A DNA stretch of 63,998 nt, the filler included, from Octopus bimaculoides (taxonomy: Eukaryota), in NCBI RefSeq assembly GCF_001194135.2. It is 4 parts of 4 records of this genome, joined end to end, with 100 filler letters (N's around TTAATTAATTAA, not from the genome) between each part and the next. Parts side by side here need not be neighbours in the genome. Positions count along the whole stretch, not along the records: positions 1 to 28,610 come from NC_069005.1; 3 more parts are not named here. One strand, 5' to 3'. Every line of letters starts with the position of its first letter. Position 1 is the first letter of the stretch. A program made the translations under genes and the position numbers. Below the pieces are notes generated by a model. It made no database searches. It worked only from the letters and a program-made list of their open reading frames with translations, and was not told where the DNA came from. Positions 609 to 20,029 of this stretch are shown here, piece by piece.

Positions 609-1918
609 GGCTCTTTGATATACACAAAAAAGGACCCACTCCATTTAGCTGCGGGGTCATTAACGATGAACAAGGATACCAGCTCGTGGAAGCGTTTAAT
701 TATGCCGTTGATTACGTTAACAGTAACCGAGGAATTTTTGACAATATCCTTCGAGGTGTCACAATTGGTTCTCTTGCTGTGGATGTCTGCCAAAGTCCAA
801 CCAAAGCTGGTAACATCGTGACAAATCTACAAAACAAGAACGCTCATCTCTTCGACAATGCCACCAACTCTTTCATCGATCCAGCAGATTTCCAGGTTTA
901 TGTCGGACCCTTTGATAGCGAATCTTCCCTACGCGTTGCAGATATTCTCACTAAATTAGGAATCCCTCAGATCAGCTACGGTGCCACTAGTGCCGAACTC
1001 TCTAGCGATCGGTACCAATTTTTTTCAAGGACTGTTCCGTCGGACAGCAAGCAGGCACGAGCGTTCGTTTCGTTTTTGAAACGCTACCAGATCAAATACG
1101 TCCAATTAATCAGCACTGAAGATACAATTGGACGGTATGGGAAAGAAGAATTTGCCAAAGTGGCCTTCGAAAACAAAATATGTATCACGCAGAACGTAAG
1201 CTTACCACGAGATGAGTTTCTAACTCAATTTGATGCTGATGTCGCAATCAATAAACTTGCCTTACAGGATGAAACAACGGTCGTTGTGCTTTTTGTAACT
1301 AACCCGCGTCTTCTGCTTGTTTCGGCAGAAAAGAACTACGTTATCACCTCGCGTTTTTTGTTTATAGCTACTGACAAATGGGGCGCCGACCCAGACATGT
1401 TACGAGACCTAAATAAACTGTTATCGAAACGCCAAATCGTTATATTTGATGTAGAAACGGCTGATCTACCGGACTTCGATAAATACCTTGATACGAAAAG
1501 TACAAGAGCGAACAACAATAAAAATTGGTTCAACGAGTATTACGAAGAGCTTTATAGCTGTACAACCACTTCCAACGCCTCCTCGAGGTTTCCTACAACG
1601 TGCAGTGGAACTAGCTATCGAACTTTACCTATAGCTCCGAAATATACTCAGGACCCTTACGTACTTTTTGTAGTCAATGCGGTCTTTGCGGCCGCCATCG
1701 GGATTCATGGGGCATTGCAAAACGTGTGTGGACGCGATTATAACATCATCTGTGATCGATTTATATCTTCCGACCAAAGACCTGCTATTCAAAGGTACAT
1801 TCTGTCATCCCAATTTATAGACCCAGGTCTGCAACCATTTTACTACATGAAAGGAAGCGATGACAGCATTCGAGGTTATCATATATATGAACCAGTTGAA
1901 ACCAAACAGTACACTAAC
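609..1918 (+). CDS. Exon 1 in window: nearly the whole first VFT domain (VFT-A)
   Basis: Acceptor tttcag|gg at 608/609 (phase 1), donor aac|gtaagt at 1918/1919. Translates GLFDIHKKG..SCG..VEAFNYAV..DVC..GPFDSESS..IPQISYGATS..FSRTVPSD..ATDKWG..WFNEYY..QDPYVLFVVNAV. Confidence 0.93.
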
Positions 1919-4900
1919 GTAAGTGACATTTTACAGATACAAATAAATATCCAAGTGGCTATGTCAGTGCACGTCATATTTCTCGAAAGGCATCATATAC
2001 AGCTATAATATCGAAGGTTACCTTGGATAGAGAAATTCGAAGGATTGCTTTGGTCCAATGGCAGGACGCTTGTTATATCTACAGGAGATCTAGGTTCGAG
2101 TCTCACGGGTAACCTTCGCCTTTCCCTATCCGAAAGAGTCTTTTTTTTTTCAAACCAATATTTTGCATGCTATTCTTTATAGTTGTAAGCTATGTGCTTC
2201 GGGAACCATTATTCCAAAACAGAATTATTTTATATTTCTCCAAATTCTTATGATGCCCGCAGTCTATCTATCTATCTATCTATCTATCTATATATACATA
2301 TATNNNNNNNNNNNNNNNNNNNNNNNNNNNNNNNNNNNNNNNNNNNNNNNNNNNNNNNNNNNNNNNNNNNNNNNNNNNNNNNNNNNNNNNNNNNNNNNNN
2401 NNNNNNNNNNNNNNNNNNNNNNNNNNNNNNNNNNNNNNNNNNNNNNNNNNNNNNNNNNNNNNNNNNNNNNNNNNNNNNNNNNNNNNNNNNNNNNNNNNNN
2501 NNNNNNNNNNNNNNNNNNNNNNNNNNNNNNNNNNNNNNNNNNNNNNNNNNNNNNNNNNNNNNNNNNNNNNNNNNNNNNNNNNNNNNNNNNNNNNNNNNNN
2601 NNNNNNNNNNNNNNNNNNNNNNNNNNNNNNNNNNNNNNNNNNNNNNNNNNNNNNNNNNNNNNNNNNNNNNNNNNNNNNNNNNNNNNNNNNNNNNNNNNNN
2701 NNNNNNNNNNNNNNNNNNNNNNNNNNNNNNNNNNNNNNNNNNNNNNNTATATATATATATATATGTCATTATTCAGTTTTAATCCAAGATTTTTTACCAG
2801 TAAAGAAAAATCTGGTTTCTAACCTAGATCCAAGGCTCTTTCATGGGAATTTCAACGGCATCTACAGAGTATGTATGTATGTATGCATGTATGTATGTAT
2901 TCGTATGTATTATAGAAAGCAAAAAGAAAATCAGTGAATGGTACCAGATATTTTTCTCTCGCCACAGATCGGCAGTTATAACGAAACCGATAATCTGAAG
3001 CTGGACGCCAGATACAATATAAACTGGTCGTCATCCTGCTCAGCAACCAGCTGCGCCAAATGTATTTTCCCTCCATCGGAACCAACCCATTTTATGACCA
3101 TGAAGTCGCCGAACGATCTCAACTTAGTCGCCGTCTTTGACATACATTTCGCAGACGATAAGGCGTTTAACCAATGCGGCAATTTAAACACGGCTTCCGG
3201 CTTTCAGCACGCTCTAGCTTTCTTCTATGCCATTCGAAACGTCAACAAAAACACTCGGAACAGACTAGCAAGCAGTCTGCAGTTGGGTGGAGTTGCCCTG
3301 GACACGTGTTCGTTACCGGTCACCCTCGGACTGGATGTCTATAGCCTCTTGACCGGAAGCAGTCGATGCAGAAAAAAAGGCGCTAACGAAATAGTGAGTT
3401 GATTTTTATTAGCTTTTATTTGCTTTATTTTTACTCACATCTCTCAGTTAAAACTACAATGATTTTCTTCCATAGCAGTTTATTCATTTATTCAGTTCAT
3501 TATAATGTAATAATAAGTTGTGCCCGTAATTCAAAGGGTCAGCCTTGTCACACTCTGTGTCACGCTGAATATCCCCGAGAACTACGTTAAGGGTACACGT
3601 GTCTGTGGAGTGCTCAGCCACTTGCACGTTAATTTCACGAGCAGGCTGTTCCGTTGGTCGGATCAACTGGAACCCTCGACGTCGTAAGCGACGGAGTGCC
3701 AACAACAACAACAATAATGTAATAAGAAAGGATGTTGAGCTGGCGGAAACGTTAACACGCCGGACAAAATGCTTAGCGGTATTTCGTCCGTCTTGCACGT
3801 TCAAATTCTGCCGAGGTCAACTTTATCTTTCATCTTTTCGGGGTCGATAAAATAAGCACCAACTAAGCACTAGAGTCGATTTATCAATTTGCACCTCACC
3901 CAAAATTTCAGGCCTTGTGCCCATAGTAGAATGGATTATTGTTGTTGTTGTTGTTGTTGCTGCTGTTGATATTGTTGCTGTTATTATTTCAATATTTTGT
4001 ATACCAGATCTTCCCGCCAGCCAGTATCGTCGGTTTCGTACCCAAAGCTAGCAGCAACGCAGTACCAATCGCAAACATGCTGAGAGACTACGGCATCATG
4101 ACACTCAGCCCAAGTGCTACAACGACCAAACTGAGCGACCAATCGATCTACCCTCACTTTCTCAGAACCGTCCCACCAGACGATCTTCAAGCGAAAGTAA
4201 TGATGGATATCCTGAAGAAAATGCAATGGACGTATGTGTCCAGCGTTTATTCGGACAACGAATACGGCAAAAGTGCCATCCAAACATTTCTGAAGGCGGC
4301 CGATAACGACACAGCGGTCTGTGCTACGAAGATAATTTCTATGCCAATGAACGCCACAAACAAGGAAGCCAAAGATATTGTTGAAAGGTTAAATCGCGAA
4401 GCTGGTGCCAGAGCCGTAGTTCTGTTTCTTAAAGACTATCAGATAAGGTGATTGTTTTTTTGGGGTTTTTTTTTAGTTTTTTTTTCTTTCGATTTTGTTC
4501 AATTTATTTAGACGCAGGATGAATGTGGGATTTGAAGGCATGTAAATAAAGTCGTTCTTAGCTAGACTTGCAATCAGGAACCGCCGACAGATTGTTCGAT
4601 TCTTAACACAACAATTGTTCAATTCTTGTCACGATCTCTCTTCGCCACGTCTCCTCTCTATCATAGACAGCATGGAAAAAAAACAGGGAAATTTTTCTTC
4701 TCTCTCACCGACATGACGTCATCTCCCCCGATGTGACGTCATCTCCCCCTGACGTGACGTTATCTCCCCCCTCTTCCGATCTTCCTTCCACCACAGAACG
4801 CCAGCTAAACTCCTTCCTTCAAAGATTTTTAAGACAGATGATGCGTTTTTATTTTCGTTTTCAACAGGCGTAGGAGTGGCTGTGTGGTAAGTAGCTTGCT

Positions 4901-5031
4901 TACGAACCACATGGTTCCGGGTTCAGTCCCACATCGTGGCATCTTGGGCAAGTGTCTTCTACTATAGCCTCGGGCCAACCAAAGCCTTGTGAGTGGATTT
5001 GGTAGACGGAAACTGAAAGAAGCTCGTCGTA

Positions 5032-5064
<33 letters not shown>

Positions 5065-5198
5065 NNNNNNNNNNNNNNNNNNNNNNNNNNNNNNNNNNNN
5101 NNNNNNNNNNNNNNNNNNNNNNNNNNNNNNNNNNNNNNNNNNNNNNNNNNNNNNNNNNNNNNNNNNNNNNNNNNNNNNNNNNNTATATGTATATATAC

Positions 5199-5242
<44 letters not shown>

Positions 5243-5381
5243 TTGCGTGTTTTTCCCCACCAACATCGCTTGACAACCGATGGTGGTGTGTTTACGTCCC
5301 CATATCTTAGCGATTCGGCAAACGAGACCGATAGAATAAGTCCTGGGGTCGATTTGCTCGACTAAAGATTATTATTGCTGA

Positions 5382-5436
<55 letters not shown>

Positions 5437-6308
5437 GTTCGTCCATTATTCAGACTATTATTGCAAGCAGCCAAGGACCTGGATTTGGTCAACCGTTTCG
5501 TGTGGATCGGCAGTGACACATGGGGAAACAACATGTATGTGGTCAGCAACGGTCTGCAAGAGACAGCAGCTGGTGCCATCACCATACAAATCAGATCAAA
5601 GGTACTGAACGGCTTCCTGGAGTACGTGAAACAACTGACATTAGAAAAACACGATGGAATTCCAGACGATTGGTTCTTCGACTTTTATCAGGATATTCAC
5701 AAATGTCGTCTGCTCTTTACTGACAGAGCGAAAAATTACGATAGAATCTGTACTAAAAATGAAGTAATAACAGACGATAAAATACAACAAGATGCATTCA
5801 TTTTCCACACAGTTTTGGCCGTTGAAATGATAGCGATTGGACTCAATAATATCAAAGAGGTAATTATAAGTCTTAGGTGGTTTTAAATAAGTTTGTTTCC
5901 CAACCACATGATGTTAGCTTCTCTCCCGCTACATGACACACACCTTGGGTAAGTGTATTAGCCCCTGCTATGGCCACTGGCCGATCAAGGCCCTGTGAGT
6001 GGATTTGCTAGGTAGAAACGAGCTGGCAGAAACATTACCCCGCCGGGCGAAATGCTTAGCAGTATTTCGTCTGCCGTTAAGTTCTGAGTTCAAATTGCGC
6101 CGAGGTCGACTTTGCTTATCATCCTTTCGGGGTCGATAAATTAAGTACCAGTTAGGTGGTTTTAAATAAGTTTGTTTCCCAACCACATGATGTTAGCTTC
6201 TCTCCCGCTACATGACACACACCTTGGGTAAGTGTATTAGCCCCTGCTATGGCCACTTTATGTTCAGCCCCTTGTGGGCAATAAAGAAATAAGAAATAAG
6301 AAACTGAA

Positions 6309-6341
<33 letters not shown>

Positions 6342-9300
6342 TGTATGTATGTATGCGTGCGTGTGTGTGTGTATTTCTGTTGTATTTGTCACCTACCACC
6401 GCTTGACAGCCGGTGTTGGTTTGTTTTCGTCTACATAGTTTAGAAGTCTTGTAAAAGAGACCGTTAGAATAAATACCAGTTTCAAAAACAAAAGTACTGA
6501 AGTCGATTTGTCCGGCTAAACCTTTCAAGGCGGTACTCCAGTATAGCTACAATCCAATGACTGAAACAAGAAAGCGAACAGAAAAACGATTAAAAGTATA
6601 TCTTAATTGAAAAGTCTTCTGCCACAGCACACTGGAATGGCTCGCAAATAACACACTTCTCAGAACACTTTGATTATTGTTTTCTATTTGAATTGGGGAA
6701 TCTTTTCCCGAAATATTCTAGGATCATTAAACAAGTTATGTAAGGTATTATCTAATCTTTTCTCTTTGTCTTCATTCATTGATATCATCTTACATACTTT
6801 GCCTCACCTGCATTCCTCAAAGATTAAAGTTTCTTTTTATGGAAACATTTGTCTTCTTTACACATAATACTGTAACGTTTCAAACCAACAGCAATTTTCT
6901 AAAATGTTTAGAGTTATAAGCAGATTTCATTTGAGATTCATATATTGAGACTGAAACAATTATAGTGTAGTAGAGTTGAAACTGGTATTTTAAAAATAAC
7001 ACACGTATGCATTATACATGTTTCATTGAGAAGGCGCGTAACTTATTAGCTAGGGTGTTCGACTCACGATCTTAATGTCATGAGTTCAATTCCTGGCGAC
7101 GCATTCTGTCCTTAAGCAAGACCCTTTATTTCACGTTGCTCTAGTTCATTCAGCTAGCAAAAAATAAGTTGTACCCGTAATTCGAAAAGGGCCAGCCTTG
7201 TCACATTCTGTGTTACGCTGAATCTCTCCGAGAACAATTTTAAGGATACGTGTGTCAATGAAGTACTCAACCACTTCTGCGTTAATTTCACGATCGTGTT
7301 GTTCTTTTGATCGGATCAGCTTGAATACTCGTCATCGTAACCGACGGAGAACCAGAGCCAGAACGTGGTCTGGAAGAGATTTTTAGCTGCTATTTTTAGC
7401 AAGTGTAATATGAGGGGGGGGGCCTCTAGGTAAAAGAAAATACAGGAGGATCTGTTAATTATTATTTCATTCAACATATGTCCCTCTCAGATTCACACAC
7501 TTATTGCAGTGGTCCTTAAGTTTTTCTAATCCCCGTATAAAAGAAGTCAGAAGACTGGACCTCCAACCAGGCCTTCCGCGAGACCCTTGAAGCCAGGAAC
7601 TTTTCAGCACCCCTTCGTACCACTATGTAGCATGCTTTCCCTATATTGTCTTTTATATCTCCATGCACATCCTTATTAACATTGCCTTTTCTAAATTCCA
7701 GTGTCGACAAGACAGTACGGTGAGCGTCGCCAGCTGCTTAGCGCTACAGAAGAACAAGAACGCCATAATCTACGACAGCGTTCGTAAATCTCCGTGGATC
7801 GATCTTCATTTAAGTGACGAAGACATTCCTAGTAATTTTTCCTTCAAATTTACGGAATCCGGTTACGGAGATATTGGTTACGACATTATGAATTATCGAT
7901 TCAATATCTACAAAAACAACTATGAATATGTCAGGGTAAGACATCTTCTAGAGTATTATTTACCGACATCGCCTTATATCCGGCCCTACCAGCCTTTTCT
8001 CCCTTCCTTCCTTCCTTCCTTCCTTCCTTCCTTCTTTCTTTCTTTCCTTCCTTCCTCACGCCAGTGTTGGGAGCAATAGGCTCGGGAACAGAAGGGGTGC
8101 AAGGAGAGTATGCCTCTTAAACTTTTGGCGAATGGGATGCAATGAAAACGCTTTTGNNNNNNNNNNNNNNNNNNNNNNNNNNNNNNNNNNNNNNNNNNNN
8201 NNNNNNNNNNNNNNNNNNNNNNNNNNNNNNNNNNNNNNNNNNNNNNNNNNNNNNNNNNNNNNNNNNNNNNNNNNNNNNNNNNNNNNNNNNNNNNNNNNNN
8301 NNNNNNNNNNNNNNNNNNNNNNNNNNNNNNNNNNNNNNNNNNNNNNNNNNNNNNNNNNNNNNNNNNNNNNNNNNNNNNNNNNNNNNNNNNNNNNNNNNNN
8401 NNNNNNNNNNNNNNNNNNNNNNNNNNNNNNNNNNNNNNNNNNNNNNNNNNNNNNNNNNNNNNNNNNNNNNNNNNNNNNNNNNNNNNNNNNNNNNNNNNNN
8501 NNNNNNNNNNNNNNNNNNNNNNNNNNNNNNNNNNNNNNNNNNNNNNNNNNNNNNNNNNNNNNNNNNNNNNNNNNNNNNNNNNNNNNNNNNNNNNNNNNNN
8601 NNNNNNNNNNNNNNNNNNNNNNNNNNNNNNNNNNNNNNNNNNNNNNNNNNNNNNNNNNNNNNNNNNNNNNNNNNNNNNNNNNNNNNNNNNNNNNNNNNNN
8701 NNNNNNNNNNNNNNNNNNNNNNNNNNNNNNNNNNNNNNNNNNNNNNNNNNNNNNNNNNNNNNNNNNNNNNNNNNNNNNNNNNNNNNNNNNNNNNNNNNNN
8801 NNNNNNNNNNNNNNNNNNNNNNNNNNNNNNNNNNNNNNNNNNNNNNNNNNNNNNNNNNNNNNNNNNNNNNNNNNNNNNNNNNNNNNNNNNNNNNNNNNNN
8901 NNNNNNNNNNNNNNNNNNNNNNNNNNNNNNNNNNNNNNNNNNNNNNNNNNNNNNNNNNNNNNNNNNNNNNNNNNNNNNNNNNNNNNNNNNNNNNNNNNNN
9001 NNNNNNNNNNNNNNNNNNNNNNNNNNNNNNNNNNNNNNNCTTAGCGATATTTCATCTGCCGTTACGTTCTGAGTTCAAATTCCGCCGAGGTCGACTTTGC
9101 CTTTCATCCTTTCATGTTCGATAAATCAAGTACCAGTTATGCACTGGGGTCGATGTAATCGACTTAATACCTTTGTCTGTCTTTGTTTGTTCCCTCTATG
9201 TTTAGCCCCTTGTTGGCAATAAAGAAATAAGAAACGTTAGCACACAAGGCAAAATGCTTAGCGGAATTTCGTCTGTCTTTACGTTCTGAGTTCAAATTCC

Positions 9301-11779
9301 GCCGAGGACGACCTTGCGTTTCAGCCTTTTGGGATCGATAAAATCACTACCAGTTGAGTATTGGGGTCCATGTAGTCGACTTACTCACTCCCTCACCCCC
9401 GAAACTGCTGGTCTTGTGCCAAGATTTGAAACCAATATGTTGGCTGTACCTCTACCTCCACCCACCCCCCATCATAATTTGTTACATATGTTCACTTAAT
9501 CTTACAAGATACTTTATTCTAAGAAATTGAAGAGAAAGTAATATTTTGATATTACATGAAAGTAATTGAAAAGAAATGCAAGTAATACAACTATTATAAA
9601 ATAAATTCTTAATTTTTATTTAATTTTCAGATTGGATCATGGGTCGACTCTTTGAACCTAAACATATTGGACTATCGAGGATCTGAATACGCGGATATCG
9701 CGATTATACCACTGTCACGTTGTCCTGTCGGAAGTACCTGCAACTGCCTGAATGCTAAAGCAGAGAAAGTGCAACAGTCAACACCTCAGTCTGATTTATT
9801 AACTTCGGGTGAAGACAAAATATACATTGACCCAGAAACGGGTGCTTTCGTCAATCTTCGGAGCCTCCCGTCTATAGGCGAACGATTCTCCAGCGTCTGG
9901 GGTACCATTGCAACGACATTGGCCGCTCTTGGAGCTTTTTTCTCGTTCTGTTTGTTCTGCTATTTCATACTTTTCTACCCGTTCCGAGGAGGCACAACCA
10001 TTCTGGGTTTCACGTTGATTATTGCTATTACTGGACTCTATTTAATGGTTATTCCGTTCGTCGCTCACGCCACTCCAGAAGTTTGCAGTATCCGAAGGGT
10101 GTTCCTAGGGTTCTTCTACGCTTTGGCCTACGCGGTGCTGGTGGTGAAACTCCTAGACGCCTACCGAAACATCGACAAGGAAGAACTGAAATACAAAAAC
10201 CTAGCACAACCTTGCGGCTTGCTGTTGATTACTCTCTTCATCGTGGCCATCCAGTTGATGATAGCCATCCAGTGGTTAATTCTACAGCCGCCAGAGGTCG
10301 TTAACGTGCCCGTGGCCGGCATGCTGTATCCTCGGTGCGCCCCGCACGACTTCTCCGACGAATCGCTGGTCATCTCATTCGTTTTCATCATGTTCCTTCT
10401 ACTCGTTAACGTTCTGATTGGTTCGGCTACGTGGAACAACCCGAACAACTGCTACGAATCGCAATGGATTCTGGGAATGGTTCTTCTCAGCATCCCCGTC
10501 TGGATAATTTGGTGCTTGATCTCCACTCTCAGCAGCTACAACGTACGAGACATCGCAGTGGCCGGTGGCATTTTGGTCAATGCCACCATATTGCTGGTTG
10601 TTGGACCACTTAACCGACTGAAACTCATGAAGAAGAACAACAACATGCAACCTTCTGAAAAAGACGATTATTATCTTTACGACAGCGGTGAGTAGAGTNN
10701 NNNNNNNNNNNNNNNNNNNNNNNNNNNNNNNNNNNNNNNNNNNNNNNNNNNNNNNNNNNNNNNNNNNNNNNNNNNNNNNNNNNNNNNNNNNNNNNNNNNN
10801 NNNNNNNNNNNNNNNNNNNNNNNNNNNNNNNNNNNNNNNNNNNNNNNNNNNNNNNNNNNNNNNNNNNNNNNNNNNNNNNNNNNNNNNNNNNNNNNNNNNN
10901 NNNNNNNNNNNNNNNNNNNNNNNNNNNNNNNNNNNNNNNNNNNNNNNNNNNNNNNNNNNNNNNNNNNNNNNNNNNNNNNNNNNNNNNNNNNNNNNNNNNN
11001 NNNNNNNNNNNNNNNNNNNNNNNNNNNNNNNNNNNNNNNNNNNNNNNNNNNNNNNNNNNNNNNNNNNNNNNNNNNNNNNNNNNNNNNNNNNNNNNNNNNN
11101 NNNNNNNNNNNNNNNNNNNNNNNNNNNNNNNNNNNNNNNNNNNNNNNNNNNNNNNNNNNNNNNNNNNNNNNNNNNNNNNNNNNNNNNNNNNNNNNNNNNN
11201 NNNNNNNNNNNNNNNNNNNNNNNNNNNNNNNNNNNNNNNNNNNNNNNNNNNNNNNNNNNNNNNNNNNNNNNNNNNNNNNNNNNNNNNNNNNNNNNNNNNN
11301 NNNNCATATATATATATGTATATACATATATATATATGTATATACATATATACGACGGGCTTCTTTCAGTTTCCGTCTACCAAATCCACTCACAAGGCTT
11401 TGGTCGGCCCGAGGCTATAGTAGAAGACACTTGCCCAAGGTGCCACGCAGTGGCACCGAACCCAGAACCATGTGGTTGGTAAGCAAGCTACTTACCACAC
11501 AGCCACTCCTGCGCCAATGTAGCACTTTCGCTACCTTATCGTGTCATCACAACCCGTAGTGGTTTTGGACAGGTCTAAGGCATTCGTTCGTGATATGGGC
11601 AATGGTTTCGTCTCCTTATTATCTATCATTGCTTCTATTTTTATTATTATTATTATTGCCATATTCTTCATGTGTGTGTTTTTTCTATTCTTTCAGGCTT
11701 AAATGATGACGATGTATTCTATGGCAACGGTTATAACACTGGTCCACGTATCAGAGATTACCCGGCATACCCCCAATAG
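609..11779 (+). CDS. Spliced gene (5'-partial): class C GPCR, mGluR-like, with two tandem Venus flytrap domains + 7TM; exons 609-1918, 2968-3393, 4008-4447, 5454-5859, 7702-7935, 9631-10687, 11697-11779
   Basis: All six introns are GT-AG and phases match (0,0,2,0,0,1). Exons sum to 3956 nt, about 1317 codons plus stop. Class C VFT motifs occur twice (FDIH, CG, DxC, SAT, RTVPxD, D-x-WG, WF-x-E/D, QD), followed by seven hydrophobic helices. Confidence 0.9.
2968..3393 (+). CDS. Exon 2: end of VFT-A, Cys mini-linker, start of second VFT (VFT-B)
   Basis: Acceptor ccacag|atc, donor ata|gtgagt, both phase 0. IGSY..SSCSATSCAKC..LVAVFDIH..QCG..GFQHALAFFYAI..LGGVALDTC. Confidence 0.92.
3512..3940 (+). 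mobile_element. SINE C tail (3512-3712) followed by a full SINE A (3737-3940) in intron 2
   Basis: First part matches 7150-7353. Second part has the head gagctggcggaaacgttaacacgcc and B-box-like gttcaaattc. Confidence 0.75.
4008..4447 (+). CDS. Exon 3: VFT-B lobe 1 and hinge
   Basis: Acceptor taccag|atc (phase 0), donor ag|gtgatt (phase 2). SPSATTTKLSD..YPHFLRTVPPDDLQA..WTYVS..DNEYG..VCA..ARAVVLF. Confidence 0.93.
4867..5366 (+). mobile_element. SINE family B (tRNA-like head, CCTTGGGCAAG-type core, internal TA/TG microsatellite spanning a gap)
   Basis: ggcgtaggagtggctgtgtggtaag..gggttcagtccc..tcttgggcaagtgtcttctactatagc; 3' half cttgacaaccga..ctggggtcgatttgctcgact. Confidence 0.8.
5454..5859 (+). 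CDS. Exon 4: VFT-B lobe 2
   Basis: Acceptor ttcag|a (phase 2, completes Arg), donor gag|gtaatt (phase 0). FVWIGSDTWG..AGAITI..WFFDFYQDIHKC..QQDAFIFHTVLAV. Confidence 0.93.
5873..6257 (+). repeat. Identical 106-bp direct repeat (5873-5978 and 6152-6257)
   Basis: ttaggtggttttaaataag...cccctgctatggccact is present twice, with no mismatch found by eye. Confidence 0.9.
5895..6575 (+). mobile_element. Diverged SINE B with nested SINE A (6020-6298)
   Basis: B sequence breaks at ggtagaaac and resumes at agaaactgaaa after an A copy. Confidence 0.7.
7033..7353 (+). mobile_element. SINE family C (tRNA-like head)
   Basis: ggcgcgtaacttattagctagggtgttcg..gagttcaattcc..ccttaagcaag..tttatttcacgttgctc; related copies at 16545-16762(-), 23900-24025(-), 34170-34445(-), 44425-44612(+). 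Confidence 0.7.
7702..7935 (+). CDS. Exon 5: C-terminal part of VFT-B
   Basis: Acceptor ttccag|tgt, donor agg|gtaaga, both phase 0. FKFTESGYGDIGYDIMNY..YEYVR resembles the mGluR F-x3-GD-x3-RYDIMN segment. Confidence 0.88.
9040..9437 (+). mobile_element. Head-to-tail SINE A dimer in intron 5
   Basis: Two gagttcaaattccgccgagg units joined at aataaagaaataagaaacgttagcac. Confidence 0.8.
9631..10687 (+). CDS. Exon 6: end of VFT-B, second Cys mini-linker, stalk and class C 7TM domain
   Basis: Acceptor tttcag|att (phase 0), donor g|gtgagt (phase 1). IGSW..SRCPVGSTCNC, then seven hydrophobic segments with class C hallmarks (TM3 C-x2-RR..Y-x5-K, TM4 IQL..WL..PP, ECL2 Cys, TM6 E and W). Confidence 0.93.
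11345..11515 (-). mobile_element. SINE B 5' half, antisense, in intron 6
   Basis: Reverse complement of the 4867-5035 sequence with about ten mismatches. Confidence 0.85.
11697..11779 (+). CDS. Putative terminal coding exon: GLNDDDVFYGNGYNTGPRIRDYPAYPQ*
   Basis: Polypyrimidine acceptor ttttctattctttcag|gc, phase 1 matching exon 6, TAG at 11777-11779. The preceding intron contains a ~600-N gap that could hide another exon. Confidence 0.7.
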
Positions 11780-12667
11780 TCCTCGAGAACACAGACACAC
11801 AGACACTGTATTAATGTAAGTAGATACAATGGCGTCGCTCTATTTCGGGTTTTGTTTTTACAACTTTCCTTATATAACATATATGTGAATGTGTGAGACA
11901 GCGTATGACTATGTATGCATATATATATATATNNNNNNNNNNNNNNNNNNNNNNNNNNNNNNNNNNNNNNNNNNNNNNNNNNNNNNNNNNNNNNNNNNNN
12001 NNNNNNNNNNNNNNNNNNNNNNNNNNNNNNNNNNNNNNNNNNNNNNNNNNNNNNNNNNNNNNNNNNNNNNNNNNNNNNNNNNNNNNNNNNNNNNNNNNNN
12101 NNNNNNNNNNNNNNNNNNNNNNNNNNNNNNNNNNNNNNNNNNNNNNNNNNNNNNNNNNNNNNNNNNNNNNNNNNNNNNNNNNNNNNNNNNNNNNNNNNNN
12201 NNNNNNNNNNNNNNNNNNNNNNNNNNNNNNNNNNNNNNNNNNNNNNNNNNNNNNNNNNNNNNNNNNNNNNNNNNNNNNNNNNNNNNNNNNNNNNNNNNNN
12301 NNNNNNNNNNNNNNNNNNNNNNNNNNNNNNNNNNNNNNNNNNNNNNNNNNNNNNNNNNNNNNNNNNNNNNNNNNNNNNNNNNNNNNNNNNNNNNNNNNNN
12401 NNNNNNNNNNNNNNNNNNNNNNNNNNNNNNNNNNNNNNNNNNNNNNNNNNNNNNNNNNNNNNNNNNNNNNNNNNNNNNNNNNNNNNNNNNNNNNNNNNNN
12501 NNNNNNNNNNNNNNNNNNNNNNNNNNNNNNNNNNNNNNNNNNNNNNNNNNNNNNNNNNNNNNNNNNNNNNNNNNNNNNNNNNNNNNNNNNNNNNNNNNNN
12601 NNNNNNNNNNNNNNNNNNNNNNNNNNNNNNNNNNNNNNNNNNNNNNNNNNNNNNNNNNNNNNNNNNN

Positions 12668-12726
<59 letters not shown>

Positions 12727-13126
12727 GCAAATATATTATTTATATTATATATATATGCATACACATACATACATACATACATACAAAGACATTCTTGTGA
12801 TCGGTAGCTGTTTGTGTACAATATAAACGTACCAATAACACATTTTTGCGTTATGAGCCAGTGCATGGGGTCTATCTTTCAATGTGATGGGTGCAGCACG
12901 TGAGTGCGTGTGTGTGTGTGTGTGTGACGCAACAGAATCACACGTTGCGATTTGGAATTCTTTAGACCTTTTCTTTCGTTCGATCTTTCTTGATATTCTT
13001 TGTTGCATGAACGGTTGACATAATGCACAGCGACAACAGCAACAACAACGATCCCGCTGCCAGACAATGACGTGTCTTCACGCTCCACAGCTTTCCTGGC
13101 GACAGCAAATGTCGGCTTCTTTCAGG

Positions 13127-13189
<63 letters not shown>

Positions 13190-14069
13190 GTCATTGTTGT
13201 TGCTGCTGCAACTGATGGTGTTGTTGNNNNNNNNNNNNNNNNNNNNNNNNNNNNNNNNNNNNNNNNNNNNNNNNNNNNNNNNNNNNNNNNNNNNNNNNNN
13301 NNNNNNNNNNNNNNNNNNNNNNNNNNNNNNNNNNNNNNNNNNNNNNNNNNNNNNNNNNNNNNNNNNNNNNNNNNNNNNNNNNNNNNNNNNNNNNNNNNNN
13401 NNNNNNNNNNNNNNNNNNNNNNNNNNNNNNNNNNNNNNNNNNNNNNNNNNNNNNNNNNNNNNNNNNNNNNNNNNNNNNNNNNNNNNNNNNNNNNNNNNNN
13501 NNNNNNNNNNNNNNNNNNNNNNNNNNNNNNNNNNNNNNNNNNNNNNNNNNNNNNNNNNNNNNNNNNNNNNNNNNNNNNNNNNNNNNNNNNNNNNNNNNNN
13601 NNNNNNNNNNNNNNNNNNNNNNNNNNNNNNNNNNNNNNNNNNNNNNNNNNNNNNNNNNNNNNNNNNNNNNNNNNNNNNNNNNNNNNNNNNNNNNNNNNNN
13701 NNNNNNNNNNNNNNNNNNNNNNNNNNNNNNNNNNNNNNNNNNNNNNNNNNNNNNNNNNNNNNNNNNNNNNNNNNNNNNNNNNNNNNNNNNNNNNNNNNNN
13801 NNNNNNNNNNNNNNNNNNNNNNNNNNNNNNNNNNNNNNNNNNNNNNNNNNNNNNNNNNNNNNNNNNNNNNNNNNNNNNNNNNNNNNNNNNNNNNNNNNNN
13901 NNNNNNNNNNNNNNNNNNNNNNNNNNNNNNNNNNNNNNNNNNNNNNNNNNNNNNNNNNNNNNNNNNNNNNNNNNNNNNNNNNNNNNNNNNNNNNNNNNNN
14001 NNNNNNNNNNNNNNNNNNNNNNNNNNNNNNNNNNNNNNNNNNNNNNNNNNNNNNNNNNNNNNNNNNNNC

Positions 14070-14620
14070 AGGGTAGGCCCGTTCACTTGCACTATGCTCG
14101 CCACTTTCCTTCACCTTTCAGCAAACTGGTCAGAAGACAACACTTCCCTCTCTAACCTTATTTTCCTTTTCAAGTGAAACTCGAAAAAGTTCATCAGGGA
14201 TTGGCCAAAGAGAAAAATGTTTGTCTTCAGCCCCTTCAGTTTCGTCCATCATACAACCTCTTTCGCCATGGCCACCAGGCATATAAAAACATCCTTTCCT
14301 TCACGGTTAAAAGGAGGCGGCGGGGCGATCTTCACGATGGATTCAGTTGACAGCCAGATCCGTCCCACACGCAACAGCAGGTGTTCGACATAAACCCGCG
14401 TCGTCCTACACGCATCTCGGACATGCTTGGCTGACGGCACTTCCGTACCAGTAAAGATTATCTCGAAAAGGCGGAGCTCCCCGGTAGCACTGCCAAGCCA
14501 GAGATTTTTGGAAATTATCTATCGGTCCCAGACCGAAAGTTCTCTAGAAAAGAGCGACCAGCTGATGTTCTTCAACGCCCAAGGTCTCCCCAAGAACGTC
14601 GTTGCACTTTTCCTCCACTA
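14070..14620 (-). mobile_element. Degraded LINE ORF2 C-terminus, L1/Tx1-like zinc-binding (zf-RVT-like) region
   Basis: Minus-strand translation with stops and a frameshift: KSLAWQCYRGAPPFRDNLYWYGSAVSQACPRC (14504-14412), then VEHLLLRVGRIWL..AKEVV*W. Resembles the W-x5-LP...CPxC motif. Confidence 0.6.
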
Positions 14621-14669
14621 ATCCTCTATAAAAGCTAAAGCAGACGTTCCATAATAATCCTTTGTGCCA

Positions 14670-14846
14670 AAGGCAAAAGGCCTGAAATTTTGTGGGAAGA
14701 GACTAGTCGATTACATCGACCCCAGTGTTTAACTGGTACTTATTTTATCGACCCCAAAAGGATGAAAGGCAAGGAATTTGAACACAGAACGTGAAGACGG
14801 ACGAAATGCCGCTAAGCATTTTGCCCGGCGTGCTAGCGGTTTTGCA
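14670..14846 (-). mobile_element. SINE A
   Basis: Reverse of the A consensus, followed by (AAT)n. Confidence 0.75.
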
Positions 14847-14848
14847 CC

Positions 14849-14909
<61 letters not shown>

Positions 14910-16358
14910 TCTTTCTAATGTTGGCATGATGCCAATATTTTGAGGAAAAAAGTCTGCTCTAAAATAATATTTTCTACATTTTTTTTATTGTCATTGTTTA
15001 TTTTTATTACTTTTTATTTGGCAGCCGGAAGACACAAACAGAAAAAGAACAAAAAATATAAAAGAACAACAAAGAAGAAAAACAGCCACCGAAAAAGGAG
15101 AGAAAAAAAGGAAGATAATCATCTGGCTGTCTTCGGAAATGGTGAGCTCAAGCGAAGAAGAGAAACTAAAATGGAATGCTGAAGCCCGCGTCAGTGATAA
15201 GAACCTACGATGTGTGCATGTGTGTGTTTGTGTGAATGTGTGTGTGCGTGTGTGGTCATGTGATAGCAGTTGTGGTGGCACGTGACTATATGATAGAATA
15301 GCAGTTTTGTATATAACAAAAAGAATAAGTGCTGTGGTTGCATTTAACCGTTTGGTTAAAGTGTGATAATGTTTTGTGATGTTGTTGTTGTTGTTGTTAT
15401 TTAACCCGTGGTCAACAGTGCTTGAGTAGACCTTTGATCATACGTCTGCTCAATCCAGACATGACTAACTCCCCCGCCCTTCTTGTCCCAGTTTGATATA
15501 GCAGCCAAATCTCCCTCAAACTACAGTTCATTGTCTTACAAAATAGAAGGCCACATTCATTAATGCAGTCATACGTACAGCAAGGTCTGAATAGAAGGCA
15601 CGGCTGGAACGTCTTTGATCTGATCACAGAACTGGACTGGGGTTACATAAAAGCAAAAACACCACGATCCCCACTGCTAACACCACTGGGGCAAACCGCG
15701 GTTCCCAGGGACGCATGTGGCCCTTAAGCATCCTTCCGGCGGCTCCCGACAGTCTTCCCTCTATAAATATAACAGATCTTTCTTTAATTGCGGCCCTCTA
15801 ACAAAAGCCCAGGTCTTGTATCTGGCCCGGATATTAAAATGGTCGAGAACCACTGCTCTAGGCAGTCACTGGGCCTGCTAGAAATAACAGCCAAACATCC
15901 CTCAAAATACAGCTTACAGTCTTAGAAAAGGAGAACACGTTGGATAATGTGATCGTGGATTTAGAAAATTAGATAAAGTAGCCGGTGATAAATAAACTAT
16001 GATTAAAATAATACAGGATGGTCATGACCAGAGTGCTGTTGGATCAGGAGCAACCCAGTACTAAACAATATCACACGTACATTGACACACCATCACTACC
16101 TCCGCCATCACCACCACTAGTAGCATCACAAGATTGTATATGTTGGTTTAATCTATCTTTAAGTAAGTTCTCTCTGACGTTTCGGTCAGAACGTTCCCCA
16201 GTTTCGTCAAAATTCAGTGTTTTTGTTTATTTGCTGCCCGTTTCTCTCCTGCCCTTTTTGCTGCTTTCGTTCGAACTCAACTAATTTAACATTCCATTCT
16301 CAAATTTTTGTATTTTAAATAAAGACTGTTTTCTATTTTTCAATAATTCGTTGTTGTT

Positions 16359-16360
<2 letters not shown>

Positions 16361-16453
<93 letters not shown>
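16361..16453. repeat. (CT)n microsatellite
   Basis: Direct reading. Representative of dozens of di-, tri- and tetranucleotide tracts in the window. Confidence 0.95.
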
Positions 16454-16455
<2 letters not shown>

Positions 16456-19400
16456 GGTCCACCTCACTCTCACCCTATCTAAACATATATCTCCAAACAC
16501 GCGTACATGGATGAGTGGAGGTATAGATAGACAGATAGATAAGCTTTCAAATGATGCCACCCCACTGGCTGAATGGATAGGCCAATAATCCCTCTGAACA
16601 GGACGCCTGTTTTTCGCGGTGTTACCTATTAACAGCCGAGTGAACCGGAGCGATAGGAAATGAAATGTTTTGCTCTAGAAGAGGAAGCACCGCTGGTCTT
16701 GGAATCGAAGCAATGATCTTGTGATGGCGAGTATAATACCCTAACCACTATGTCACGTGTCTTCAGAATTTAAAACACTGGGAGAAAAGTGGTGTCAGGG
16801 AATCTAGAAAGATCGATTTATTGATACATTTAAGAAAATTATAAAATTTGACATTTTGGAACACATCACCTCGAATCGGATCTGTCGTGTTAATGAGAGG
16901 AGAACTTATCTCCACTAAAAGAGAGCTGCACAGAGAACTATATCTTGGATAAAGAAGGAAAAGAAGGAAGTGCCGTCCACAGATGTTACGGTTATTCGAT
17001 ATGTAATCCCCTGGAAAGATATGGATGAATACGAGATAGGTAAATGGATTTCTACATTTACGAGTTGACTGTTGAAGTAGAAGCCGTGTGGCTGTATGTG
17101 ATTCTAGGCAGAGACGAATCTAGGAAAGAATAGCTGACCTTAACTTTGTGTATATCGAAAAGTTCACAGTATTTATTTTTCGGTGGGAAATGTCTTATTG
17201 GCGTCAGGAAAATTCCCGACTATGTTCATTAAAACAACTAAATTATATGGTAGATTACACCAGAATCCCTTTTTCTTCGTGTTTCACTTTTGGTGTTGAA
17301 TAAATGTTGAATGAATATCATAGTAAATACTTCTAATCAGCACATCGCCACAAAATGAAGAGGACTCGTTGAATAAGTCCGTCTGACGATAACTTGAAGA
17401 CTTAACTAACTGCGATTACGTGGTATATAAATATCGCTGGGGTGGGGTTAATCATAATTTTTTGTATTTTAATTTCGTGTTTTCATTTGACTTTCTATAA
17501 GTGTATTCATTACTCGTTTGTATTTAAAGCTAGTGATATAAGTAGGAAGTTGATTGTTAATAGCTTAAGTACAACGGTTAAGTTTAAACAAAACGCCTTA
17601 AATATTCCTGTTAAATATTTTCTAAACTTATGCATGGCGTGGTCTTTTGTTTTACGTGAACTTTCAAAGCCGTTGTTTCGGACACTCCTGGGATATTAGA
17701 GGTTGGGTCGCTTTTGAGGTATGTCAAGGATAAACAATGTATCTGTGCGTGTGCGCCTGCATGCGTGTATGGATGTATGTATTTATGTATTTATGTATGT
17801 ACGTAAACTGTTACAGATTTTATGACAAACAACCAAACGGTAATTTATTTCGGGAGAAAATATTTCACACAGAAACCGATTAATTCGTTGGTATATTTAC
17901 AAAACAAGAAACGTTGCTTAACATATTCAATAATCGTCCAGTCAAGATTCCCACACATTCCTTTTCTCATCCTTAGTTTTCTTACTTCTTTCAGATATTC
18001 TTTACATTTTTCTGCTTGTTATTTTGGTGTGGAGGAGGTTGAGGGCTGAAAATCTTTTATCATCCTTAATAAAAAAGAAATCGTTTATTTACCTTACCAA
18101 TTATATTCCTCCACGCTGGATTTGTTCGTTATTGTTGTTAACAACCATCTACTACAGCTGGCTAGGAATATATATATTCTAAGTCGTGTGAACCGAAAAG
18201 TGGTGACACTGCGGAACTGAAGGGGGAGCTGAGCAAGAAGGATCTGAGAGAACCTTTATGGCCCTTAAATTGGATAAGCACGCAGTTGCAGATTTTAGCG
18301 AAGACGTTTGCGGAAGATTAAAGTCTGTGGTCGGTAGTGTAAAAGAGAGGGCAAAAATCTGGTAGATATCCATCCGTGGCATCTCTTAGTAATTTACTCT
18401 AGTGATTTGATTTTATAAATATGGTACATATTTTATTGACCCACAAGGGAAACAAAAGGTGGAGTTGGCAACGGTGGGATTTGAACTCAGAACCTAAAGA
18501 CATATTTTCAGGATGCTGCTTGCTCAATTCACTGCCATCCTCCCACCACCACCACCACCACCCAACATCACCACCTCTCCTCTCGCTACGCCACCTTTCC
18601 TCTTTCCCTCTCTTGTCCCTTTCTTTGCATTCTGTCATCTTCTCCCCCTCCACCCTCTCTCTCTTTCTCTCTTACCGCCGTCACACTCACTGCTCTTCTC
18701 TCCCTCCTCCTTTACTTTGACTACTCCTACATATTCTTCCCCCCACTCTCTCTCTATTCTTTTACCTTATCATTTTCCTCTCAGAACTCCATCCTACCCC
18801 TATCCCCCCCATACCGCTCAATCGTCTCCATTTTATTCTTTACATCGCTCATTTCCTCTCTTTCTCTCTCTTTCTCTCTCTCTCCCACTCACCCTCTGTT
18901 CGCCTCTCCCTCTCTCAGTCTCCTTCTACCTACCTACCTACCTATCTATCTATTTATCCACTTACCTACCTATCGTTCTCTTTTCTTCATCTCTCCGTCT
19001 CTCTCCCTATCTCTCTCTCTCTACTCCCCTCCCTGCCTCTGTTACTTTCTCCCTTTCGCTCTCTCTCTCCCTCTCTATATTTTTATCTCTCTCTCTTTAT
19101 ATATATANNNNNNNNNNNNNNNNNNNNNNNNNNNNNNNNNNNNNNNNNNNNNNNNNNNNNNNNNNNNNNNNNNNNNNNNNNNNNNNNNNNNNNNNNNNNN
19201 NNNNNNNNNNNNNNNNNNNNNNNNNNNNNNNNNNNNNNNNNNNNNNNNNNNNNNNNNNNNNNNNNNNNNNNNNNNNNNNNNNNNNNNNNNNNNNNNNNNN
19301 NNNNNNNNNNNNNNNNNNNNNNNNNNNNNNNNNNNNNNNNNNNNNNNNNNNNNNNNNNNNNNNNNNNNNNNNNNNNNNNNNNNNNNNNNNNNNNNNNNNN

Positions 19401-19643
19401 NNNNNNNNNNNNNNNNNNNNNNNNNNNNNNNNNNNNNNNNNNNNNNNNNNNNNNNNNNNNNNNNNNNNNNNNNNNNNNNNNNNNNNNNNNNNNNNNNNNN
19501 NNNNNNNNNNNNNNNNNNNNNNNNNNNNNNNNNNNNNNNNNNNNNNNNNNNNNNNNNNNNNNNNNNNNNNNNNNNNNNNNNNNNNNNNNNNNNNNNNNNN
19601 NNNNNNNNNTCTTATAAAAGAATTCGTCCTATTATTGATTTTT

Positions 19644-19680
<37 letters not shown>

Positions 19681-19762
19681 ATATTTGTACATAAGTATTT
19701 ATCCACTTACCTATCTTTCTCTTTTCCACATCTTCCCCGTCTCCCAACTACCTCTTCCTTCT

Positions 19763-19809
<47 letters not shown>

Positions 19810-19974
19810 TCTTCACAAGCCACCAGTCGACCGTCCACCTCACAAAATTATATTCAAAATCCCATCGTTTAACCTTAAACTTCCATCACACAACTATTGT
19901 TCCATGCTCCAGTTCTCATTGCACTTCACCGCAATGGGCCGTGTTCCCATCAGAACTATCTCGATCTTCGAGAC

Positions 19975-20029
<55 letters not shown>

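Follow-up and report, generated by a model that had tools for sequence, protein, structure and literature searches.

A class C receptor gene of Octopus bimaculoides with five tandem Venus flytrap domains ahead of one seven-transmembrane domain

In G protein-coupled receptors (GPCRs) of class C, one Venus flytrap domain (VFT) per subunit closes on a ligand, the VFT dimer reorients, and a rigid cysteine-rich domain moves the seven-transmembrane domain (7TM). In GABA-B receptors, which are obligate heterodimers with one VFT per chain, the VFT is joined to the 7TM by a short stalk without a cysteine-rich domain, and to our knowledge they are the nearest precedent for a class C receptor lacking it. 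Here we describe the Octopus bimaculoides gene LOC106868777, analysed at 609-11779 (+ strand) of the window, the whole 63,998-nt stretch of octopus DNA under study. A preliminary description of this interval had reported a class C receptor with two tandem VFTs in one polypeptide. The gene encodes five, numbered V1 to V5 from the N-terminus, of which V4 and V5 lie in the window. Sequence similarity of its 7TM to GABA-B subunits was marginal (E 0.008).

The closest described receptors are the metabotropic glutamate receptors (mGluRs), best the group III receptor mGluR7, which is the best solved relative of both VFTs in the window and of the 7TM. Like mGluRs, the octopus protein has the VFT fold (Foldseek TM-score up to 0.83), a loop cysteine in V5, the backbone-binding residues Ser/Thr/Asp/Tyr/Asp, the cysteines of transmembrane helix 3 (TM3) and extracellular loop 2 (ECL2), the TM3 Lys and the TM6 Glu. 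Unlike mGluRs, the chain has five VFTs rather than one and three cysteines after each VFT rather than the nine-cysteine NCD3G domain; V4 and V5 lack Arg78 and Lys409 (mGluR1 numbering), and the units belong to a poly-VFT clade of their own (100% bootstrap). Two clamshells per chain also occur in ionotropic glutamate receptors (iGluRs; amino-terminal plus ligand-binding domain), where the distal clamshell modulates rather than gates, and in the bacterial ABC importer GlnPQ. In these systems the output is a channel or a transporter, and the clamshells are of two different types or of bacterial type.

The class IV mGluRs (Drosophila DmXR/mangetout) are likewise invertebrate, and keep the backbone residues while Arg78 and Lys409 are replaced. 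According to PMC6307864, these two residues bind the distal carboxylate of glutamate, the pair serves as a criterion for glutamate-activated receptors, and its replacement beside kept backbone residues is argued to mean an amino-acid ligand other than glutamate; in that paper the word "tandem" occurs 0 times. The bacterial proteins BvgS/EvgS also carry tandem VFTs before the membrane, in an intertwined dimer whose distal and proximal VFTs behave differently, and in BvgS stacked VFTs can set output through the conformation of the whole dimer (PMC4352136). They have two VFTs and a histidine-kinase output, and the likeness is an analogy of design, not kinship.

No description of tandem-VFT class C receptors was found in the full-text literature covered, which leaves most subscription journals outside, and no poly-VFT family was found in the searchable papers on class C or mGluR evolution. 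Literature on tandem VFTs returned only bacterial BvgS/EvgS and GlnPQ. The gene sequence itself is not new, being already in RefSeq; judged from the sequences compared, the array of 4-5 VFT units without a cysteine-rich domain, conserved across Bilateria, is apparently undescribed.

Gene structure and domain architecture

The DNA is AT-rich animal sequence (40% GC) with eleven N gaps in the analysed piece. The longest stop-to-stop frames on the + strand were 602-2005 (468 codons) and 9613-10692 (360 codons), and several others had 150-180 codons. Splice sites were set by inspecting the ends of the open frames. This gave seven exons between 609 and 11779 in which all acceptors were AG, all donors were GT, and the phases formed an unbroken chain. 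Spliced together, the exons read 1317 aa in one frame down to a TAG (11777-11779), with one split codon left over at the 5' end. The features of the model are as follows.

609..1918, + strand: exon 1 in the window, nearly all of V4 (VFT-A of the preliminary description), model residues 1-436, phase 1 acceptor
2968..3393, + strand: junction exon with the last strands of V4, CSATSCAKC, ~20 linker residues and the start of V5; open frame 2938-3399
3037-3063, + strand: three-cysteine linker CSATSCAKC, within the junction exon
3100..3102, + strand: internal ATG, the start codon in the first octopus annotation (A0A0L8HSW2)
3127-3147, + strand: first strand of V5, VAVFDIH, the start of lobe 1, within the junction exon
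within 3358-3378, + strand: V5 loop cysteine, junction exon
4008..4447, + strand: V5 exon with the Ser/Thr/Asp/Tyr backbone-binding residues (splice sites, phase, mGluR7 alignment)
5454..5859, + strand: V5 exon, lobe 2 and return to lobe 1, with GSDTWG, the Asp318 equivalent (splice sites, mGluR7 alignment)
7702..7935, + strand: V5 exon, C-terminal part of lobe 1/2 (splice sites, mGluR7 alignment, orthologs)
9631..10687, + strand: exon with the end of V5, CPVGSTCNC, the stalk and the entire 7TM (Pfam, mGluR7)
9721-9747, + strand: three-cysteine motif CPVGSTCNC, in the 7TM exon
9823-9852, + strand: conserved stalk motif Y-x-DP-x-TG, within the ~50-aa stalk
9886-10599, + strand: Pfam 7tm_3, inside exon 9631-10687
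10688..10695, + strand: donor of intron 6, GTGAGT, then an in-frame TAG; retention would give a protein ending ...DSGE and a stop
11697..11779, + strand: last exon, 27-aa C-terminal tail and TAG (AG acceptor, phase; RefSeq has the identical exon)

In the Pfam scan two stretches matched ANF_receptor (E 1.1e-82), and a single 7tm_3 match at model residues 1024-1261 scored 97.3 bits (curated cut-off 33.5); there was no NCD3G match in the model at E <= 0.1 or in the orthologs at E <= 0.01, the outcome that the preliminary description had predicted for this check. Against PDB sequences, V4 (residues 1-472) aligned end to end with residues 23-496 of mGluR7 (E 4e-54), V5 (VFT-B; residues 2-505 of its segment) did so as well (E 6e-54), and the best match of the 7TM was the mGluR7 7TM (E 1.5e-13). 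Splice sites, Pfam and the mGluR7 alignments agree on the phase-consistent seven-exon open reading frame (ORF) first proposed, with two complete VFTs followed by one 7TM. In the 7TM alignment the Cys and Lys of TM3, the Cys of ECL2 and the Glu and Trp of TM6 fell in place (EVCSIRRVFLG, VVKLL, PRCAPHD, CYESQW); the TM3-ECL2 cysteines, the TM3 Lys and the TM6 Glu have roles in class C structures. By its 7tm_3 domain, the VFTs N-terminal to it and the TM3-ECL2 cysteine pair, the predicted product is a class C (glutamate-family) GPCR, and it has neither the nine-cysteine NCD3G nor the single VFT per chain of the mGluR/CaSR/T1R type. Only CPVGSTCNC and a ~50-residue stalk with a conserved Y-x-DP-x-TG-x-x-V separate V5 from TM1, which leaves no canonical cysteine-rich domain through which the 7TM could be coupled.

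In an AlphaFold2 (AF2) model of the two-VFT segment both domains folded (mean pLDDT 73.8), and Foldseek matched it to mGluR VFT crystal structures (target TM-score <=0.83), with solved chains covering at most one of the two VFTs (query TM-score <=0.40). As evidence of how V4 and V5 are arranged the model was rejected (pTM 0.50); it confirms two folded VFTs only.

A search of 5.8 billion proteins returned XP_052832771.1 (RefSeq LOC106868777, Octopus bimaculoides, 2189 aa) at 100% identity over 100% of the model, so RefSeq uses identical splices; exon 609-1918, lying in the open frame 602-2005, was itself 100% identical to it. The preliminary description had allowed that similar uncharacterised models might already be in databases, and besides this one there are dozens of relatives labelled "uncharacterized". 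The locus is GCA_001194135.2 CM046625.1:6174657-6209610. The window starts directly 3' of a 2369-N gap, and because the acceptor at 609 is phase 1 the gene continues upstream. The interval 609-11779, at first treated as the receptor, does belong to a single gene, LOC106868777, of which it is the 3' part.

Upstream, both RefSeq models (the older, XP_014769682.1, has 2444 aa) add ~870-1130 N-terminal residues. In local hidden Markov model (HMM) segmentation these comprised part of V1, the whole of V2, and a V3 for which the assembly has only the first ~80 residues and ~140 later ones; the gap just before the window hides the exon that completes V3, encodes the V3-V4 linker and gives the split codon its first base. 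Reading the ectodomain as a signal peptide and five VFTs draws on the full-length orthologs; neither the signal peptide nor the N-terminus of V1 was recovered from the octopus. The architecture first described thus stands for the window, with its VFT-A and VFT-B being V4 and V5, while the count of two per polypeptide becomes five for the whole gene.

Several details of the upstream sequence (L002 coordinates) were noted. The V3 pieces lie at 12646-12918 (N-terminal ~80 aa) and 15071-15427 (C-terminal piece), and gaps occupy 13697-14672 and 15807-18175; over 15042-15221 the current RefSeq model departs from the VFT-like frame, which XP_014769682.1 follows. A separate 241-aa ANF_receptor gene fragment at 1-2193, upstream of LOC106868777, runs off the locus and is probably the missing N-terminal half of its V1 (and signal peptide).

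Within the window, the N gaps at 2304-2747, 5065-5183, 8157-9039 and 10699-11304 all fall in introns of the model. Compared with five orthologs, residues were contiguous on both sides of every exon junction, including across the gap at 5065-5183. The only length difference was in a variable surface loop before the exon 1/2 junction, up to 10 residues shorter than in bivalves and short in the gastropod and the flatworm too. From these alignments, no coding sequence appears to have been lost in the four intronic gaps. The last exon is taken as real because its tail motif, YG-x-x-Y-x-x-x-P-x-x-x-D, aligns with the tails of the Logan and Candidula orthologs. P0020, a 334-aa Logan ORF from another Octopus species, ends ...DSGE as retention of intron 6 would; it was rejected as splice evidence, being the ORF of the large 7TM exon reading through the donor, probably genomic.

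As first described, the passage from V4 to V5 lies inside exon 2968-3393, where the reading frame runs from the V4 tail into the V5 head without a stop. The junction sequence is kept in other species: the octopus linker reads C..C..CIFPPSEPTHFMTMKSPNDLNLV, a bivalve-like Logan transcript reads C..C.CVFPEYQPSRYMNMPSPNDLNIV, and Dreissena, Candidula and Macrostomum are similar. Inter-VFT linkers in the full-length proteins all have C-x3/4-C-x2-C, ~12 residues and the next "PGD..I.G.F.VH" strand. Logan contigs, which are assemblies of public sequencing runs, contain uninterrupted ORFs of 2027-2802 aa spanning VFTs and 7TM. One of 6404 nt / 2027 aa (3.5 VFTs plus 7TM) is intron-free and 61% identical to Dreissena, and further intron-free contigs measure 9030 nt / 2802 aa, 10192 nt / 2730 aa and 8611 nt / 2376 aa; they are taken as spliced transcripts because the octopus gene is split by introns. 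Logan contig L001 was rejected as a guide to the true N-terminus, having an in-frame stop 30 nt before the first Met; it is a 5'-incomplete or partly unspliced transcript.

V4 is encoded almost wholly by one 1310-nt exon (609-1918), whereas the homologous V5 is spread over five (2968-10687), and V2 upstream is likewise multi-exon (L002 6992-10703). The contrast suggests that the V4 unit lost introns or arose as a processed copy.

Family members, unit orthology and ligand pockets

A HMMER search with V4+V5 as the query, exhaustive over 1.84 billion representatives, gave 397 proteins at E <= 1e-30. Top matches were named through a cluster look-up and segmented locally; Pfam counts agreed with the local segmentation for three of the named proteins. 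The octopus model was 42% identical to the bivalve orthologs over 1317 aa. Relatives are labelled "uncharacterized", "hypothetical" or, loosely, "mGluR3-like", and were segmented as follows.

Babylonia areolata (2871 aa), Physella acuta, Bulinus truncatus: signal peptide, 5 VFTs, 7TM
Argopecten irradians, Sinanodonta woodiana, Dreissena polymorpha: signal peptide, 5 VFTs, 7TM
Tubulanus polymorphus (nemertean, 2787 aa): signal peptide, 5 VFTs, 7TM
Lingula anatina (brachiopod), Macrostomum lignano (flatworm): 5 VFTs, 7TM, N-terminus incomplete or from two models
Centruroides (chelicerate), Anneissia (crinoid), Saccoglossus (hemichordate): signal peptide, 4 VFTs, 7TM
Limulus, Procambarus (crustacean): ~3.5 VFTs, 7TM, N-truncated models
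Amphioxus: at least 3 VFTs, 7TM, N-truncated model

For Macrostomum lignano, two overlapping models combined gave a signal peptide, 5 VFTs and the 7TM. No vertebrate or insect member was present among the proteins named from the top matches. Three Polypterus proteins labelled "CASR protein, partial" (3927, 3171 and 2496 aa; 7-10 stretches) were rejected as vertebrate poly-VFT receptors: the 3927-aa protein is a string of near-identical partial VFT segments, a merged tandem array, and the 3171- and 2496-aa proteins share its name and contig.

In a neighbor-joining tree of 32 VFT units, the units grouped by position and not by species, with bootstraps of 98% for V5 (flatworm, bivalves, octopus), 75% for V4 (molluscs 98%) and 81% for V1. 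All poly-VFT units formed a clade at 100% that excluded human mGluR7, a CaSR-like protein and GPRC6A. Because the units cluster by position, the array predates the mollusc-flatworm split. The 7TM tree placed the spiralian 5-VFT and arthropod 4-VFT proteins in one clade (95%), which included a one-VFT neighbour in Dreissena, and showed two mollusc paralog groups. By its 4-5 tandem VFTs, each followed by C-x3/4-C-x2-C, its single 7tm_3 and its unit-by-unit orthology, the array as predicted is of the poly-VFT type.

An octopus paralog was also found (O. vulgaris CAI9740512.1, 2570 aa, 5 VFTs; O. sinensis XP_029653751.1), 29% identical and labelled "glutamate receptor 3-like". Its 7TM groups with those of Sinanodonta and Argopecten, which means that two paralog lines, both ancient, exist in molluscs. 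Residues 2860-3852 of Dreissena XP_052236911.1 (P0023) are a read-through into the neighbouring one-VFT class C gene; the 7TM of this neighbour lies inside the poly-VFT clade (95%) and its VFT weakly near V5 (38%), and it may be a secondarily shortened derivative. A Pinctada imbricata protein (P0012) has two VFTs, an apparent single-pass transmembrane helix (by eye) and a ~600-aa low-complexity tail, and gave no 7TM match. A Patella caerulea protein (P0013) has about three VFT-like units and a 7TM.

The equivalents of mGluR1 Arg78, Ser165, Thr188, Asp208, Tyr236, Asp318, Lys409 and the Cys140 loop were read first in a MAFFT alignment and again in an HMM alignment of ~80 units. The backbone set in octopus V5 is S-T-D-Y-D (5/5), in V4 S-T-D-I-D (4/5), and in V2 a degenerate T-M-H-Y-D. 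Arg78 and Lys409 are H/F in octopus V5 and L/Y in V4; across the units, Arg78 is replaced in all but one and Lys409 in all. Family-wide, V4 is the most consistently preserved pocket (S/T-T-D, usually with D/E at Asp318, in most spiralians). The V5 pocket is preserved in the cephalopod, the bivalves, the nemertean and the flatworm; V2 is usually degenerate, and V1-V3 vary widely among species. V1 is S-T-D-Y-D in Babylonia, Dreissena and Tubulanus, and in Tubulanus XP_074641006.1 (P0033) all five units have S-[TS]-D-Y-[DE]. A cysteine in the lobe-1 loop (mGluR1 Cys140 region) marked V5 in 13/13 spiralian proteins, and their V1-V4 units all lacked it. By these residues octopus V5 and V4 are putative amino-acid-binding VFTs and do not have the residues of a glutamate-activated mGluR (classes I-III); as aligned, the pattern allows two or more amino-acid-type sites and does not bear on AND-logic or chemosensation.

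Readings of receptor function

Function can be considered from what the sequences show: LOC106868777 is a single gene whose product has five tandem mGluR-type VFTs and a class C 7TM, lacks a cysteine-rich domain, and has an old, conserved architecture. On balance we favour a five-VFT class C receptor that would work as a V5-driven dimer, with accessory V1-V4 and non-glutamate, amino-acid-like ligands. The receptor would act as a dimer, as other class C receptors do, and a dimer of that kind would carry ten VFTs. Since only V5 keeps the lobe-1 loop cysteine, the membrane-proximal V5 is proposed to form a covalent, mGluR-like VFT pair through an interchain disulfide, and closure of its clamshell would act through the stalk on the 7TM to activate the G protein. 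With the backbone set complete in V5 and four of its five residues kept in V4, and with Arg78 and Lys409 absent from both, the likely ligands are not glutamate but other amino acids or small molecules like them, which V5 and probably V4 would bind. V1-V4 would sit on top of V5 as accessory modules, sensory or allosteric, that adjust V5-driven activation without taking its place.

Several points weigh against this proposal. Transcript support comes from species other than O. bimaculoides, and in the octopus V3 and the V3-V4 junction are hidden by assembly gaps, where both RefSeq models are patched. The V5 backbone residues are degenerate in gastropods, in Lingula and in the octopus paralog, and V4 is the best conserved pocket, so V5, as read from these alignments, may not act as primary sensor throughout the family. 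The membrane-proximal unit of the sampled 4-VFT proteins shows no loop cysteine. The residue calls rest on alignments at ~25-30% identity, the inter-domain geometry of the AF2 model is unusable (pTM 0.50; linker and stalk pLDDT < 50), and dimerisation we infer from class C precedent.

A broader claim would be that of an ancient, bilaterian-wide, undescribed family (5 VFTs in spiralians, 4 in arthropods and ambulacrarians, at least 3 in amphioxus) whose stacked VFTs each bind a ligand and whose inputs are integrated; taken whole, it is possible and we hold it only tentatively. The protein might be a true multi-ligand or coincidence detector, possibly chemosensory: every VFT would have a small ligand of its own, and firing would require, or be strongly enhanced by, occupation of several of them. 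The amino-acid backbone signature kept in octopus V4 and V5, the Tubulanus pattern, which favours several active pockets, and the differing specificities of the tandem substrate-binding domains of GlnPQ all suit such a detector. It remains doubtful: octopus V2 is degenerate, V1-V3 vary widely among species, and no route is evident from closure of a distal VFT to the 7TM. Chemoreceptors typically show lineage-specific expansion, unlike this conserved family of one or two copies.

In another arrangement a single VFT would sense the small ligand and the distal VFTs would be ligand-free structural or adhesive modules, serving as a rigid spacer or a platform for protein partners, as membrane-distal domains of other receptors do. 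The degenerate V1-V3 pockets of many species point this way, as do the short, conserved, cysteine-containing linkers, which suggest a stiff stack. In BvgS the distal VFT1 is mobile, the proximal VFT2 is closed and the intertwined periplasmic dimer sets the default kinase activity (PMC4352136). We consider it unlikely as an account of the octopus receptor, for the conserved V4 pocket is hard to explain without ligand binding, and V1 keeps S-T-D-Y-D in the three species named above.

Very improbable is an annotation or assembly artefact in which a VFT-only gene, or a duplicated fragment, beside a one-VFT class C gene was merged by the choice of splice path. Gaps abound in the assembly, merged class C models are on record elsewhere (the Polypterus 3927-aa "CASR, partial" protein and the Dreissena XP_052236911.1 read-through), and the first octopus annotation (UniProt A0A0L8HSW2, 837 aa; P0019, sequence beginning MKSPNDLNLVAVFDIH) called only VFT-B and the 7TM. 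That one-VFT model, however, begins at the internal Met in exon 2 and has no signal peptide, whereas the V4 tail and V5 head share one open, stop-free exon. The same junction sequence recurs across phyla, 3.5-5 VFTs and the 7TM are encoded together in intron-free transcript contigs, and independent annotations of more than 10 species agree on the order of the units. Because the junction is conserved, intron-free contigs span VFTs and 7TM, and the units are orthologous by position, the view already taken in the preliminary description, that these are not two genes merged, is upheld. That the gene is a decaying or non-functional copy is hardly credible: TM7 reads PLNRLKL against P-x-RKLY in orthologs and Tyr236 is replaced in V4, but all seven exons are open with intact splice sites, the 7TM-exon ORF of the second Octopus species (P0020) differs by only a handful of residues, and identity to bivalve orthologs is 42% across all 1317 aa.

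Repeats around the gene and meaning of the architecture

Downstream of the gene, at 11780-28610, a tblastn search with class C proteins revealed no additional exons of that class on either strand. The open frames listed there on the + strand translate low-complexity sequence or microsatellites ((CT)n, (CA)n, (ATT)n, His/Thr-rich), and six further N gaps are present. Rfam and tRNA scans of the window gave no matches. An interspersed element of ~190 nt occurs in three copies, 93-97% identical (4866-5063, 11319-11515 and 26194-26384), each adjoining an N gap and a TA/TATG-type microsatellite ("YIYIYI" when translated); the assembly gaps were probably brought about by this setting of repeat and microsatellite. 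A second short interspersed repeat (~125-145 nt, 80-92% identical) has many copies in both orientations, in introns and downstream, including the following and others.

6021-6154, both orientations among copies: second repeat, copy within the gene
9040-9164 and 9230-9355, likewise: second repeat, copies within the gene
20575-20717, 26648-26797 and 27626-27755, likewise: second repeat, copies downstream

The octopus receptor combines an mGluR-like 7TM and a disulfide-competent proximal VFT with four more VFTs stacked beyond it and no cysteine-rich domain, and this five-VFT form has been kept unit by unit at least since molluscs and flatworms diverged. The Tubulanus ortholog is the best candidate for asking whether every VFT unit binds ligand, and the family can be tested by standard expression and signalling assays whichever reading holds. 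If the distal pockets do not bind, the array would be a new structural use of the VFT fold. If they do, these receptors would provide natural multi-input integration in a single GPCR chain, a combinatorial extracellular computation that we know of for no GPCR, and a template for engineered multi-analyte biosensors.

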